From positions 13,874-77,873 of the forward strand of contig CDMY01000431.1 of the NCBI GenBank assembly GCA_001179505.1: 64,000 bases of DNA. Direction: 5' to 3'. The stretch is from Vitrella brassicaformis CCMP3155 (Eukaryota; Protista; Chromerida). Below, piece after piece: positions 43,938 to 52,597 of this stretch (positions are counted from its first letter, which is position 1; every line of letters begins with the position of its first letter). Under the pieces are notes generated by a model. It ran no database searches and was not told the origin of the DNA. It saw nothing but the letters and a program-made list of their open reading frames with translations. The position numbers and the translations under genes are program-made.

Positions 43938-44519
43938 CAACTGGCTGCTCGTTACCCCGGCCGTGCGATCTGCCTGTGCTCGATGCGAACCGTTCCTGCG
44001 ATGTACATATTCATGATGTACACTAACACACCGACTTGCCTACGTGGTCGTCAAGGCGTGTATTGTTATGTGCCTGTCGCATGTCACACAGTCAATACTT
44101 CCTGTGTGAAGCGTGATTGGTCATGGATCATATTTCTGCCCTTCATTACCCGCCCACTGCGTGCACAGATGAGGGAGGCGATTGATTTTCTGCCTGGTCT
44201 CCCTCTGTCGTGGCTAACTGACTTAACATCGTCTGTTCAGTCCCCCGTTTGTCTCGCAATGCACCAATACAACCTACTAGACACACATTCGCACACACAG
44301 AAAGAGCAGAGCAGGGTGCTTGACCGCCCAGCTGCACAGCACAGCACAAGACGGCCAAATAAAGCACGTCAGTCAGTCATCAGTGACCTTCGCTCACCGC
44401 CTCAGCTCTCGCTTCCAAGGAAGTCATTCACTCACCTGGTGGCGTCACTCAGACTCTTGCCGCCTTGCAGACAGAGGCAGTGGCCCGCCAGGTGATGGTC
44501 AATGATGCCTCTGTCTGGA

Positions 44520-44602
44520 CGACATATGAACAGGTGAGACATATGAACAGGACGACATATGAACAGGTGAGACACACCTGTGAGACACACCTGTGAGACA
44601 CA
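44520..44602. repeat. Short compound tandem repeats (gacatatgaacagg x3; gagacacacctgt x2-3)
   Basis: Directly visible. Confidence 0.8.
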
Positions 44603-44716: not shown

Positions 44717-44824
44717 ATGGATGGAGCGACTCATGTACGTTTTCTGTGCGGCATGGATGGAGCGACTCATGTACGTTTTCTGTGCGGCATGGATGGATGG
44801 ACTTATGTACGTTTTGTGTGCGGC
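44717..44824. repeat. 36-bp minisatellite, two exact copies and one degenerate
   Basis: Unit atggatggagcgactcatgtacgttttctgtgcggc at 44717 and 44753; no spacers. Confidence 0.9.
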
Positions 44825-45006
44825 GAATGAACAAACACCGATCCATCGAGCCCATGCATGCATGCCTACTACCAAAACAATGCATCTACACAACGCTTCT
44901 CTCAGCTAGCTACAGCTCTTGTGCGTCAGCGACATGATAGTGAGCACACTGCTTCAGAAATGACCTGAGGGAGACACACATGAGGAGGGAAACCCATTTT
45001 CCCCAC

Positions 45007-46612
45007 CTATGTGTGGGTTGTCGTCGTGTGTCTCAGCCCATCGTACGTGATGGTATCTGTGAAGTGTCTGGTGGCCTCTGCCTCGTTCATGCTCATCTGC
45101 ACTGTCGTCGATATCTCATAACCCACATAGTCACCCTCGCCACCACCAGCCGCAGACGAGGAGAACGACTCCTTCCTGTCCCCCTCACCCCCCTCCCCCT
45201 CTGTCAGTGTCTCGTGCTGGCGATCCTCGGTGGGTGTGTGGCTGCTGCTGCTCTCACGCCTCCTTTCCTCCTCCTTGTGTTGCTGCGGGGGTCTTGGCAG
45301 GCCGCCATTTGCGAGCGGGATCTCGGTACATCGGACAGTGGGCAGTGAGCGGAATCGCTCCCACTCATTTGTCTTGAGGAACAAGCGACTCAGACGGACC
45401 TGCGAGAAAGCGACGGCAAAGAGAGGGTCCGTGTCTCGCTCTCTATGCTGAGTGTGGTCACCCGAATGTGAGGCGTGAATGCAGTTCCGACACTCTCGAG
45501 GAGGTTCGGCCCCATAAAGCCGACCGATGGGCCGTGCGCGAACACCTTAGAAGTCCACTGGCCATTTGTCCCACCATTGCCGTCTCCCTCCTCTCGCCGA
45601 GGGGAGGTGTTAGGCGCACTTCCCTTTTCTGTTGTGTCTTTGGTCCATACGAGGGACTCTGGCGAGAGGCACTCGCCCATTTGCGTCTGGACGTCCGCCA
45701 GGATGGCCGCCAGCTCGGCGAAGACCGCACGCACAGGGCGGCCAGCACTGCACGGATGCATGGAGGCAGAATTGATGCAGATGCCTGTCACTTTCTTCTC
45801 TGTACCCGATGACTTTGATGACGAGATGGTCAGAGAAGTTGATGAGTGCTGCGGCTGTGGGCGTGTCGCCGGCGGACACCAGCACAGACCGATGACGGGG
45901 CCACCAGCGAGGGAGCGACTCCTGCAAGCGAGCGACCCATCCATGCACAGCTGGGGAGGACAATGAGTGTGCGCCGCACCTGTCGCTGATTCTCAAAGAG
46001 ATTGATGCCAAATTGGCCGGTGAGGAGAGACTGGTCTTCGGCAGACAGCGACTGATCGACACACACGCACAGACTTCGCCAGACAGTGCCTGTCTCTCTG
46101 ACTCACGCACCTCCACGAGCAGGTGTCTGGCGTCTTTGAATGCCGCGCATTTCTTCATCGCCGGCACCAAAGCTTTCTCCACCTCCCGCAGAGAAAGCAC
46201 CCCACGATTGGTCGTCCCTGCATCCATCGGACAGACACACGATGGGTGGATGGACAGACGCCATGATGCACATGTCTCCCTGACCAGAGAAAGAGCTGGT
46301 GGTGCATGTGGAAGTGAGAAACGGCGTCCCTTGCAGATTCCGCCGCACCGCCAGCTGCCACTCCGACTTGCCCAACCCAGGCGGGCACACAATCGGGCTG
46401 TCCATCTGGTGGCTCACAGACGCGTCCACCAATGCCTTGCTGCCGCTCTCGATGGGCGTGAAGACGGAGAGCGGCGGGAAGGTGGCCGCCTGTGCCCATG
46501 GTGGGTGGAGAAATGTGAGGATGGCGTGGGTGAGCGGCTTGAAGAGGGTGAAGGATTCCTCGTCACCGGCAGATGCCCCGCCTGTCATGCGTCGTGCATC
46601 CCTGACCGTGCA

Positions 46613-46648
<36 letters not shown>

Positions 46649-49600
46649 TGTCATAACCTGGCAGCTGAAATATCTCTCCTGCGAGAGCGATCTCGTTCAG
46701 AGTGAAGCCGGAATCGGTCCTGCACAACACGCATCGACAGACAGTCAGTGAGACGCCAGCAATGTCGATCGAGGAGAGCGTCACAGACACACACACTCAC
46801 TGTTTGCCTCTGAGTTGTGCGGTGATCTCATTGATGTCGCCGCCCTTGATCGTGAAGTCAAATGAGGGCACTGGCAGCTGACAAGAGGGAGAGGGAGACA
46901 ATTTGTGAGTGGGTGTGTGAGCAGTAGAGACAAACAGGTGGACCATGGCATCAGCGTCTGCGCCAGGGATGTGTGTGTCCTCTGTGGCCAGCTCTTCTTC
47001 TCTCTCAATCAGCTCCGACACCCCTCTGTTGAACTGCTCGACCACCTGTGCCTCGCTCATGCCCAGACTGCTGACCGTACGCACCCACACCAAACCTGCA
47101 CACAAGTCAACACACAGACCGATGGATGCACGTCTCTGCATCTTCCCTCTCCATGCTGCATTCTTACCAGAGTTGCCCAACTGTTTCAGTGGTTTCTTGC
47201 TCTCAACAAAGCGGAAAGCCAGGCGGTGCTCTGCGCACATCTTGGCCAGCTCACTTGTGTCCCTCCCCACCATACTCCGCCGACTTCTCTGCGACCGCAC
47301 TTCGCCACCGCTCTCCTGCTGCTGAGGATGCTGTGCTTGTGTATTGTCCATCATGGCCGGGCGCAGGTGGTCTTCCATCAGTTTGGGGATGACCAGACGA
47401 GCCGAGAGCTCTAGTGCGGTGCCGAGGCCTTCTGGGAGGGCGGTGAGGTAGCCGAGGCGATTGGAGTAGGCAAAGGCCATGTCTGTGTCGCTTGACTGGA
47501 AGGCCCGCAACACGTGGAAGAGGCGCTCTACGCAGCGGAGAGCGTTTCCCTCCGCGTCGCAAGAGGCGATGTCGAGGTGGTTGCGGGCGTTCATCACGCC
47601 GCCCCACAGACAGCTGCCACTCAGAAACGCACTACGACCTGACACACACACATACACACAGACACACATACACACAGACACACACACAGAGTTCGTTGCT
47701 GTGTGAATGCATGCGTGTGTTGTGTACCGACCAATGGGCCACTTTTGCTTGAAGCCGGCACACGAGTGGAACTCAGTCAGATTGGGATAGAAGCCCAGAG
47801 GGAACATCAGGTCGCGACCGAGCTGCAATCAGTAAGACAGTCAATCAATCAACAAATCAGTCGATCAATCGGTCAAGAAACATGCCCTCGTGTTTGTGTC
47901 TCAGACTGACTGACTTTGTCTTGTGGCGAGTCAGAGAAGCCGAAGACGGCTGGCGGGCCGACATACTGCGCATCAGGCTCAATGGCCGTACTCAGTTCTG
48001 CCGACGACTCAACCGCATGGAAGGTGGCACGCAGCTGACGCAGACACACGCACACGAGTGATGCACATCGTCTCCTTCCACCCTTTCCGCATTCCTCGCT
48101 GACTTTTGTTTCGATGTGTGTGAGCTGCTGCGGCAGTGCGCCCGGCACAAAGGGCTCATTTGCCACATTCCGTTGCACCTGATGTACACACACTTACGCT
48201 ACGCTTCTTTCTCCCTGTCTCTGTTCTGTATGCTTCTCGGATTACCTTGGCAACGATGAGCGGTACGTATGTTTGGCTGAGCGTCTGGATGAATCTGTCC
48301 TTCAGGGGAGCAGTGGGAGCATCAGAAGGACAGGTGGGAGACGCCAACACGAGATCGTCGTGCTGCAACGAAAGAAGGCACACCACACAACAGTCCCTCT
48401 CTCTTTCTCCGATTCTTAGGATGCGCGTGTGTTCAGACCTAATCGACGCACTCACTTGGAGCTCTTGTGGTTCTACTTTGTGGTATGCGGCGATGAGGGG
48501 ATCGAACAGCTCCTGATAGACGTCGTACGCAGCGGCCTCGCCCACCGACACGCCGCAGCTCGTCACGCCGTCCCACGAACTGACATTGGTAAAGTGAGAG
48601 AGTATACAGACATCTTTCTGTTTGAGTGTATGTTACGTGTCTCCGCTGGGGCAGAGGCAGCATGTGAGGAGGGCATCCAAAATGGGCCACTTGAACTCAA
48701 GCCGAGGCGCACCCTCCTCGCCCTGTTGGTCATCCTCCTGCATGCATATACACAGGCACACAACATGCATGTCTCTATGCATGCGTCGCGGCTTACGGTA
48801 ATCATTTTGTGTTGCAGCATCCTGAATGTCTCCAGCTGTGATGGCGTGAGGAGAGTGCTGTTCTGCTGTGTGATGTGGCTTAGCTGCAGCCCCGCCGCCA
48901 TGGCAGCGTCCACGTCAAACAAACCGTCACGTGACGGCAGTGAGATGTCCGTCTCGCGCCGCTGGTGCCGGAACGTCTCAATAGCCGCCGTCTCCCCACC
49001 GCCCCTCTCTTCTTCGTGGTCGAGGGCCATCTGCAGCAGCGGGGAGAGGTCGGCCCTCCATGTCTGCGTCATGGTTCACACACACAGCAATGAACACACC
49101 AAGACAGAAGAAGAAAGAGGAGAAAGGGGCGTTCAGACAATCAGCTCATTTACAGCGGCGAAAGGGCTGAGTAGCTCGTCCATGAGTATCTGGTCCACCC
49201 GTACCACCCCCTGCGCAGCCTCCAGCAGCTTGGTCAACGTCTCAACCTCATCCGCACCGAAACGCGACCGCCACACCAGCTCCACCACACCCTGTAGGCA
49301 CACACAGATGGATGAGTGGATGGATGGATGGACACTCAAATGTGCATGTAAGTGGCCTTCTCTCTTTCTCTCTGCGTGTGTGTACTTGCCTCTTCCAGTC
49401 GTGTGTATTTGCCAATCTTGAGGCCCCGCCCATCAGCCTCTTCACGCAGCCGCTGGTGGCCCGCCAGACACAGCCCCGGCAGCCGCAGCCCGACAGAACA
49501 CCTGACGAGAAACAGAGGCCAACAAGATGAATTCAGGAGTGCGTCCATTTGTGTACCGTAGAGAGTGTCCTGCGTTGCCCGGGTCGTAAGAGAGGAAGCC

Positions 49601-51350
49601 AAATGTGGAGTGGTAGCTATATGCCTGGCTCGCCACCTCAGAGCCCAATGTGCGCTGCAGCCATTCACCGACAGACAGACAGATGGCAATATAAGCACGC
49701 AAAGACGGACGGAGAGAGCTTCATACCGCGATGAGCTCCAGGATCTCTGCCACTTTGAGCAGGCCCTTCTGGAAGGCACTTGATGTGGGCGAGGTGACCC
49801 GCTTGACCACCTTGACATGATCGGTGGTGTTGACCCATATGGCGGTCTCCATGTCGTCTCCCAGCCACATGAGACGGCCCGTCGGCCACTCACGATTCAG
49901 ATCGATGCAGTCCAACATCTCAACCTGCATTGAATTCAGCACGACAGTGGGCGTGGCTGTGTTGTGTGTGTGGTTGGTCATCTTGCCTTGTGTGGGAAGA
50001 GGCCCAGCCGAGAGAGCCGGTGCTTCAAGTGGGGCTGCCGCTCTTCCAATGCTCTCACTGGCACATAGTCACCCTGACACCGCACACACAGTTGCACACA
50101 GAATGCCATTTCTCGCGCTCTTGTGCATATGTGTGTGTGTGTCTATCACCTGTACGCCCAGTGTGGAGGGCATCTTTTGAAACGCCTCTTCGATCGTCTC
50201 GCTGAGCTTCGCGCGCTGGGCGGCGGTGATCTTGGGGGTGAAGGGGTAGCCTTTCACGTTCCTGAGTAATTGAGACACAGTGGGAAAAGACAGAGACATG
50301 GAGGGGGGTCGGTGTGTGTTTGTGCATACCTTGATGCTCGCATGCGGGCAAACACAAATCGTTTTGAGTCGAGTGTTGCCAGGGGAAGCCTTTCGAAGCT
50401 TTCTGAACGCGCAATGCTGTGCTGATATACACGTGTGCATGGACGAGTGGATCGATGTACGCGATGTCGATACACATATCTTATCTCTCCCTCTTTCTTA
50501 CCGCAGCAAGGTCCGTGTGCAGCTGCAGAGACCTGTGGACATGCTGCGATGCCATCAGCTCGGAGAATATATCACTGAAGACATCGTAGCACTCGGTGTC
50601 CCACGCAATCAAACCTAAGGAGGAGAAAGACAAAACAAAAAGCATTCACTCCGAATCTGTCCCGCGCTTTGTTGGTCCTGGTGTGTTGTCCACCGATGAG
50701 GGACTCAGGGTGCTCGATGCCCAGCCGCAGGCAATCCCGCAATGTCGTCCCGCCTGGCGTCTGCTGCACCGTCGTGTTATAAAGCTGACCAGACACACAT
50801 ACAGTCGCGATTTCTTGCCTCTCTCTGTGGAATTATCCATTCGTGTGTACGTCTCTGGTGAGAGTGCCTTTGATGGCGGCCTTCGACTCATCCGGCAAAG
50901 GCATATCCTCCATCTGCGGCGCGCTGGCGCCTTCCTTCTCCTCGTCCCTCTCGTCATCGCGCCGCTGCCGATCTTTGGCTGACAAGACCGACAGCCCGGC
51001 CGCCTTGAGCTCGGATGGCGTGCACCGCTCAGAGAGATACTGCAGCTGTCAGAGAGAGAGAGAGGTAGAGGGAGAGAGGGATGCTTATGTGTGTGCACGT
51101 GGGAGATGGCTGGAATCATCTAAGCTTACGATGAAGACTTTTGGGTTTGGTGATCTCCGCTGGACGACGTTGTTGAGGAGCTGTCCGAAGAGTCGCTCCA
51201 GGTTGTGCTGCTCAATGTACTTTTTGGCCTCCAGCTGGGCACGTGTCACCCTGACACAACCCAGACAACAAGACAGCAGCGGGACACTCGTCGCATAACA
51301 TGTCACGGATGAAACATGCAGTGACATTGCTCTGACCTTCTGGACGACAT
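45007..51350 (-). CDS. Three-domain ATP:guanido phosphotransferase (arginine/creatine kinase-like) pseudoenzyme with N-terminal RIIa/Dpy-30-like domain
   Basis: ATG 51350 MSSR|RVTRAQLEAKKYIEQHNLERLFGQLLNNVVQRRSPNPKVFI. D1: TPGGTTLRDCLRLGIEHPES, RNVKGYPF, EWPTGR..WVNTTDH, FGFLSYDPGNAGHSL. D2: CGVSVGEAAAYDVYQELFDPLIAAYH, KWPIGR, VMNARNHL, LGYLTALPEGLGTAL, LGMSEAQVVEQFNRGVSELI. D3: GFTLNEI, FTLFKPL, VRRNLQGTPF, WWPRHR, INFSDHL, MSMNEAEA. 3' end approximate. Confidence 0.85.
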
Positions 51351-51630
51351 TTTGCCTCTGTATGCGTCAACGATGGTCGCAAAACACTAGAAAGAAATCC
51401 CCGGAAACTGGGGGGCTCTGGGGGCCAAAACAGTGGTGTTCCTTCGTTGAGCTCCCGAGCAAGGAGGGCGACGTGTTGTGCAATCATCATGCCTGGCAGC
51501 AAAGGAGGCTCGAAAGCGTAAGCACAAAAGGCGCCTTGTCCGTCACTTCCTTTCAACTGCTTCCTGTCGTCGGTCTGCAGTGACAGAGGAGGGTTTTTCG
51601 ATGTCAAGAGCTCTGAAACGTCGGCGGCCT

Positions 51631-52297: not shown

Positions 52298-52597
52298 NNN
52301 NNNNNNNNNNNNNNNNNNNNNNNNNNNNNNNNNNNNNNNNNNNNNNNNNNNNNNNNNNNNNNNNNNNNNNNNNNNNNNNNNNNNNNNNNNNNNNNNNNNN
52401 NNNNNNNNNNNNNNNNNNNNNNNNNNNNNNNNNNNNNNNNNNNNNNNNNNNNNNNNNNNNNNNNNNNNNNNNNNNNNNNNNNNNNNNNNNNNNNNNNNNN
52501 NNNNNNNNNNNNNNNNNNNNNNNNNNNNNNNNNNNNNNNNNNNNNNNNNNNNNNNNNNNNNNNNNNNNNNNNNNNNNNNNNNNNNNNNNNNNNNNNN
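52298..52597. other. Assembly gap (300 N)
   Basis: Run of N flanked by G-rich sequence. Confidence 1.

Follow-up and report, generated by a model that had tools for sequence, protein, structure and literature searches.

Phosphagen kinases are textbook energy-buffer enzymes. What their fold may be used for once the chemistry is lost is the question raised by a gene of the chromerid Vitrella brassicaformis CCMP3155, located on the minus strand at positions 45007..51350 of a 64,000-nucleotide stretch of contig CDMY01000431.1 (assembly GCA_001179505.1, positions 13,874 to 77,873 of the forward strand). This whole stretch is referred to here as the window, and all positions are counted from its first letter. 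An earlier inspection of the letters, the sequence-only reading, had proposed that the gene encodes three consecutive arginine/creatine-kinase-like domains in tandem, each of them deprived of its catalytic signatures, together with a RIIa/Dpy-30-like docking domain. Our analysis favors the view that the product derives from a multi-domain phosphagen kinase and has become a docked protein without catalytic activity. It would be a fast-evolving, C2-less member of an uncharacterised family of docked tandem kinase-like proteins of chromerids and dinoflagellates, whose domains are as a rule degenerate, and its most likely location is the axoneme. The probability that we assign to this reading as a whole is roughly 55%.

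Three kinase-like units in one spliced gene

At the gene level, short coding blocks taken from a six-frame reading and from inspection of the DNA were joined by hand into 29 exons comprising 1,432 codons plus the stop. The frame runs from an ATG at 51350-51348 to a stop codon at 45009-45007 without a single internal stop (GC content about 56%), and it is interrupted by 28 introns of 55-98 nt each, 26 with GT-AG and two with GC-AG borders. This hand-made model was compared over positions 45360-51359 with four (X1, X3, X5 and X6) of the six public sequence runs that contain the stretch, and no differing letter was found among them. Run X5 provides a single 4,423-nt contig with the introns removed and run X1 shorter spliced contigs; X3 and X6 consist of unspliced genomic pieces. 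All 15 listed RNA joints coincide with introns of the model and, apart from one GC-AG joint, have the plus-strand ends CT..AC, that is, GT..AG on the gene strand. For exons 3, 9, 13, 20, 21, 24, 27 and 28, the coordinates in the X5 contig equal the cumulative mRNA coordinates of the model minus 17, and the constancy of this offset across eight exons indicates that the remaining introns also fit in net length. In agreement with this, the 4,423-nt contig matches the net lengths of exons 3-29. The spliced contigs of X5 and X1 substantiate in this way the initial claim of a single spliced gene at these positions, with a frame that stays open over all junctions.

The kinase-like character of the product, in terms of the phosphagen-kinase family of Pfam (PF02807 plus PF00217), was evaluated with a canonical profile built from 17 canonical domains drawn from search matches, against which the joined model was scored along with shuffled controls; the latter reached a maximum of 0.9-4.1 bits, and no more than 2 bits for D1 and D2. 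Domain 1 (D1, residues about 85-457; 49154..50928, minus) comprises both N and C lobes and scores 179.6 bits, with a PF00217 (ATP-gua_Ptrans) match of 4.2e-5 on exon 9 and a match of 5e-9 to the Protein Data Bank (PDB) structure 4rf6. Domain 2 (D2, residues about 520-963; 46944..48877, minus) scores 110.1 bits, with PF00217 at 3.2e-14 and PDB 4wo8 at 4.7e-14. The best structure matches of the D2 and D1 exon queries are two-domain enzymes themselves: 4wo8 is a taurocyamine kinase and 4rf6 an arginine kinase. In D2, moreover, about 70 residues of polar character are inserted (47169..47384, minus), left unaligned by hmmalign, in place of the flexible 309-319 loop region. Domain 3 (D3, residues 964-1432; 45010..46877, minus) scores 33.4 bits, a signal confined to its first 277 residues: residues 964-1240 reach 35.7 bits, and the last 192 residues (1241-1432), placed by motif order only, give -2.2 bits. 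Pfam searches on single exons yielded weak N-lobe matches besides PF00217; exon by exon they were essentially blank on D3, where exon 24 gave a weak N-domain match (E = 0.075). With this restriction on D3, the proposal of three consecutive units in one gene is upheld, and the notion that three contiguous phosphagen-kinase-like domains are encoded in one expressed and correctly spliced frame is supported.

Some details of the gene model should be mentioned. Of the two GC-AG introns, intron 8 (49925..49986, minus) corresponds to the joint 49923>49986 in X1 and X5, which reads GC..AG after a 1-nt shift within its stated ambiguity. Intron 11 (49292..49389, minus) is placed by net length only, as the combined length of exons 10-12 follows from where exons 9 and 13 lie in the contig. 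The start codon and the putative 14-nt exon 1 that bears it (51337..51350, minus; donor GTCAGA; in-frame stop 13 codons upstream) are predictions read from the DNA, because the RNA contig starts only at 51247, three bases inside exon 2. If intron 1 were retained, an alternative in-frame ATG at 51327 would alter the first residues only. At the opposite end, the length of the 4,423-nt contig relative to the position of the last exon, an arithmetic estimate, places an approximate 3' untranslated region at 44866..45006 (minus). Just past the end of the mRNA contig (about 44866), a 36-bp unit is repeated three times with 94% matches (44717-44824), and more short tandem arrays are found at 44517-44602.

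Three introns, 46878-46943 (66 nt), 47096-47167 (72 nt) and 48035-48103 (69 nt), have a length multiple of three and no in-frame stop, a situation in which retention of any of them would add residues and keep the frame; the RNA contigs show all three removed. During hand annotation, exon 6 (50332-50430, minus) was first read one frame off, as ISTALRVQKASKGFPW, and taken for the kinase 'STRVR...GYPF' segment. This reading was rejected because the frame linking to the next exon gives FVFARMRASR joined to NVKGYPF and leaves the open reading frame intact. The resemblance of the off-frame ISTALRVQKASKGFPW to the kinase segment 'ISTRVRCGRSLQGYPF' is likely due to chance, but it can mislead anyone who annotates by hand.

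State of the active sites

In these enzymes, Glu225, Glu314 and Cys271 bind the guanidinium group and polarise it, and Arg126, Arg229, Arg309, Arg330 and Asn274 hold the phosphoryl group (PMC11075012). The nucleotide is bound by Arg124, Arg126, Arg229 and Arg280 together with Ser122, His185 and His284 (PMC12467219), and both Arg309 and Glu314 are located in a mobile loop (PMC11492440). To read the equivalent residues in the Vitrella protein, its domains were aligned to the canonical profile and the matching columns were inspected, with residues numbered as in Limulus arginine kinase.

All the motifs described here lie on the minus strand. In D1, the profile alignment places the equivalent of the NEEDH motif at 49817..49831, where it reads NTTDH, with Thr in place of both Glu224 and Glu225, and the Arg229 that follows is replaced by Lys. 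Its reactive-cysteine motif (49565..49603) has Asp instead of Cys271 and keeps Pro272 and Asn274, as well as Arg280 just downstream. In D2, the corresponding alignment yields NARNH (47577..47591) and a cysteine motif (47418..47456) with Leu for Cys271, Gly for Asn274 and Glu for Arg280. In D3, the NEEDH equivalent is NFSDH (45826..45840), with Arg229 changed to Val. The presumed cysteine motif of D3 (45483..45524), one residue longer and devoid of cysteine, was located by position and motif order in a hand alignment with no profile support, and its assignment is positional because the D3 signal sits entirely in the first 277 residues of the domain. Glu225 and Cys271 are missing from D1, D2 and D3 alike, as the sequence-only reading had stated with motif coordinates that were correct to within a base or two.

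The losses extend beyond these two residues. D1 has also lost S122, H185 and H284, and its 309-319 loop is about four residues shorter, although it retains R124, R126, R280, R330, N274, P272, D226 and H227. Four of the six phosphate-binding arginines (R124, R126, R229, R280, R309 and R330) are present in D1 and none in D2 and D3 where they can be aligned, and from the core set formed by R126, E225, R229, C271 and R280 nothing is retained in either D2 or D3. A comparison of columns gives a similar picture: D1 retains 22, D2 13 and D3 15 of the 26 non-catalytic columns that do not vary within the canonical set, versus 2, 0 and 0 of the six invariant catalytic columns (Fisher p 0.014-0.03 for each domain), bearing in mind that the canonical set had been picked for possessing the motifs. 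Animal multi-domain kinases included in the same alignment conserve 5/5 core residues in every domain, which indicates that the alignment procedure does not create false losses.

Judged by these residues, the status of the Vitrella protein as a pseudoenzyme is well supported. The stronger assertion that all three domains are catalytically dead has to be qualified: the loss of Glu225 and Cys271 from all of them speaks in its favor, but the retention of R124, R126, R280, R330 and N274 means that residual binding of nucleotide or phosphate by D1 is possible.

The N-terminal docking motif and the dinoflagellate relatives

Residues 9-51 of the predicted protein (51028..51240, minus), encoded on both sides of intron 2 (51046-51129), resemble the Dpy-30/RIIa-type docking and dimerisation motif and align without gaps to 17 multi-domain relatives. 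The signature P-x-N/D-P-x-x-F-x-x-x-Y/F-L, situated at the helix turn that follows an amphipathic helix, is present, and the spliced sequence reads ...SPNPKVFILQYL... there. A hidden Markov model of the family built without the Vitrella protein scores its spliced N-terminus at 24.4 bits, versus at most 6.4 bits in 1,000 shuffles. The family-motif profile matches in turn the radial-spoke protein FAP385 (7jtk) at 1.5e-7 and human DPY30 (3g36) at 8e-7. Its further matches include AK7, AK8, NME5, EFCAB10, PKA RI-alpha and the enolase of the flagellar central apparatus. A precomputed PF05186 (Dpy-30) match exists for three relatives, P0031, P0110 and P0113, and their motif aligns with that of Vitrella. 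The docking domain announced by the sequence-only reading was thus borne out transitively, through the family profile, and the similarity supports the assignment of the N-terminal motif to the Dpy-30/RIIa docking superfamily.

The relatives were identified in an exhaustive search among 1.84 billion representatives with the D2 exon as query. No close orthologue was found in that set with this query, which is a poorer bait than D1 would be, and the relatives recovered share at most 34% identity with it. Many matches are proteins of 1,000-2,100 residues with two to four kinase-like units, and the 17 relatives mentioned above bear the docking motif just before the first unit, gapless with respect to Vitrella exon 2. 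They derive from dinoflagellate transcriptomes (Polykrikos kofoidii), from MMETSP and from environmental data, with a single annotated genome entry, the 'unnamed protein product' P0109 of Symbiodinium natans. They begin with a C2-like domain, conserved and about 100 residues long (PF00168 on one member, P0112), and continue with the docking motif and the kinase-like units. Vitrella residues 7-457 are collinear with residues about 111-570 of P0018, P0084, P0015, P0014 and P0016, and identity to the Vitrella protein is 25-35%.

Degeneration is not exclusive to the Vitrella protein. P. kofoidii P0006, P0021 and P0024 and S. natans P0109 show the same docking motif followed by tandem kinase-like units that are mostly degenerate. 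Within the 17 docked relatives, only 3/51 domains keep R126, E225, R229, C271 and R280 together, and 15/17 proteins are left without any intact domain. In a domain tree, the domains of the relatives fall into position-specific clades, which suggests an early origin of the degenerate tandem arrangement. The Vitrella protein constitutes the extreme case, with neither Glu225 nor Cys271 in any domain, unlike its dinoflagellate relatives, which usually keep one of these residues in at least one domain and possess the extra C2-like domain. A C2-like exon was sought upstream on the minus strand and gave no tblastn or motif match, a negative result made somewhat doubtful by an assembly gap at 52298-52597 and by a 5' end that is a prediction. 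The gap comprises 300 N, lies upstream of the putative start codon at a distance of about 950 bp and could conceal a further 5' exon, for instance a C2-like one. The domain phylogeny is uninformative for the Vitrella domains themselves because of their very long branches (3.2-5.0 vs a median of 0.73). D1 is placed with canonical kinases on one of these branches, and an approximately unbiased (AU) test does not reject its grouping with the family (p 0.39).

Other multi-domain kinase-like proteins present different N-terminal modules, such as the PH domain of P0002 and of Mallomonas P0008, and P0101, read by eye, seems to have an EF-hand-like N-terminus. It seems that protists have joined a tandem, partly degenerate kinase body to more than one kind of targeting domain. 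Our literature searches brought up no account of a docked or inactive phosphagen kinase, nor of this dinoflagellate family. The remark that such a protein had not been described in alveolates holds for published descriptions, but homologous architectures do exist, uncharacterised, in dinoflagellate data.

Comparison with known multi-domain enzymes helps to delimit what is particular to this protein. Sea-urchin sperm flagellar creatine kinase, the enzyme of a flagellar energy shuttle, likewise contains three phosphagen-kinase units per polypeptide. The sea-urchin enzyme, as far as is known, has catalytic motifs in all its domains and is anchored to the membrane by N-terminal myristoylation. The Vitrella protein, in contrast, has no intact domain, starts with MSSRR and lacks Gly2, and carries the Dpy-30/RIIa motif instead. 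Similarly, the two-domain arginine kinase of Anthopleura (4rf6) and the two-domain taurocyamine kinase (4wo8) are tandem units of the same fold as D1 and D2, but both keep NEEDH and the reactive cysteine in their two domains and lack a docking domain.

A docked pseudoenzyme and its alternatives

How might such a protein work? In the mechanism that we propose, the N-terminal four-helix motif would dimerise and clamp an AKAP-like scaffold by its amphipathic helix. The likeliest docking site would be the flagellar axoneme of the zoospore, at the radial spoke or the central apparatus. The three dead kinase bodies would then serve as a structural or regulatory module, that is, a scaffold or a ligand sensor and not an ATP buffer, with D1 perhaps still binding phosphate or nucleotide. 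The axoneme is proposed because other nucleotide-metabolism proteins tagged with Dpy-30/RIIa domains dock there, namely AK7, AK8/FAP385, NME5/RSP23 and enolase. The profile of the N-terminal motif matches these chains (in the case of FAP385/AK8, the N-terminus) as well as RSP2. DPY-30-domain proteins are known to dock on RSP3 in radial spokes (PMC3494852, PMC12399478, PMC8339350). The shared logic would be a small dimerisation domain that serves as the tether of a nucleotide-metabolism fold, with an amphipathic helix such as that of RSP3 as docking partner (PMC3494852, PMC12399478). The difference lies in the cargo, which in Vitrella is a catalytically degenerate phosphagen-kinase fold, a fold that we have not found reported with such a tag, and docking on the axoneme is in this case proposed by analogy. 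On this basis a flagellar role of the protein is plausible, and by the same analogy it may be axonemal, expressed at the zoospore stage and employed as a sensor.

Several observations weigh against this interpretation, and they also define the alternatives. To begin with, the Vitrella docking motif was seen neither by Pfam (with the 51085-51327 frame, which covers exon 2 and part of intron 1, or with exon 2 alone) nor by PDB searches (exon 2 alone), blanks that are explained by the splitting of the motif by intron 2. Furthermore, Dpy-30/RIIa domains have roles unrelated to cilia as well, in COMPASS and in the anchoring of PKA. The motif might anchor the protein to a non-flagellar scaffold, either an AKAP-like protein of the cytosol, cortex or membrane or a nuclear complex that binds Dpy-30, where the dead kinase domains would act as adaptors. 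The presence of Dpy-30 itself and of the PKA RI/RII docking domains among the profile matches fits this possibility, and the C2-like N-terminal domain of the relatives (PF00168 on P0112) hints at membrane or Ca2+ association. However, the top match, FAP385, is an axonemal chain, as are AK8, enolase and EFCAB10 among the next ones; the named relatives come from flagellated organisms; and the enzyme class from which the protein descends is a classic energy shuttle of flagella. We consider a non-flagellar anchor rather unlikely for these reasons.

A second group of objections concerns D1, whose four phosphate-binding arginines and Asn274 make some binding, or even residual chemistry, possible. 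Arginine kinase in which either Glu225 or Cys271 alone has been substituted is known to keep measurable residual activity, so that the enzyme is impaired and not dead. At least one domain, most likely D1, could then still be an enzyme with weak or altered chemistry, acting on another guanidino or a non-guanidino acceptor or in a phosphatase-like manner, and the protein would be a docked active enzyme of energy metabolism. The partial activity of those single mutants and the conservation in D1 of R124, R126, R280, R330, N274, D226 and H227, on top of 22/26 other invariant positions, agree with such a view. Nevertheless, Glu224, Glu225 and Cys271 are absent from D1 all at once, its Arg229 is replaced by Lys, none of the three residues that contact adenine is left and the 309-319 loop is about four residues shorter, and D2 and D3 are without essentially all catalytic residues. 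A surviving enzymatic activity thus appears improbable. Finally, the absence of demonstrable homology in the C half of D3 (-2.2 bits with the canonical profile), the very long branches, which might also reflect relaxed constraint, and the lack of a close orthologue among the 1.84 billion representatives queried with the D2 exon would all suit an expressed but functionless relic under neutral decay, yet this is very improbable given that a 1,432-codon frame remains open over 28 correctly spliced introns (we estimate that random sequence of the same composition would lack a stop with a probability of the order of 1e-23), that the losses cluster on catalytic columns and that the same kind of degenerate domains, in position-specific clades, persists in many dinoflagellate lineages.

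Returning to the preferred reading of a docked, non-catalytic derivative, it can be extended to the whole group of proteins. Chromerids and dinoflagellates might share an undescribed family of Dpy-30/RIIa-anchored tandem pseudo-phosphagen kinases working as structural or energy-state-sensing subunits of the axoneme, and Vitrella would have kept the fold for a purely non-catalytic flagellar role. We advance this broader proposal tentatively, as a possibility with the odds against it. To judge from the literature that can be searched, a pseudoenzyme branch has not been described so far for the phosphagen kinases. A practical consequence concerns annotation, as the automatic label 'creatine kinase' attached to the relatives P0011, P0040 and P0111 (one source) is probably wrong as a functional name. 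If the interpretation is correct, the Vitrella gene and its dinoflagellate relatives would represent a whole family in which the fold has been kept and tethered while the chemistry was lost, and they would add a new class of cargo to the Dpy-30/RIIa docking system responsible for the organisation of nucleotide metabolism on axonemes. The family would also supply a concrete candidate density for cryo-EM and proteomics of alveolate flagella and, in the end, a natural experiment on the role of the kinase fold once catalysis is gone.

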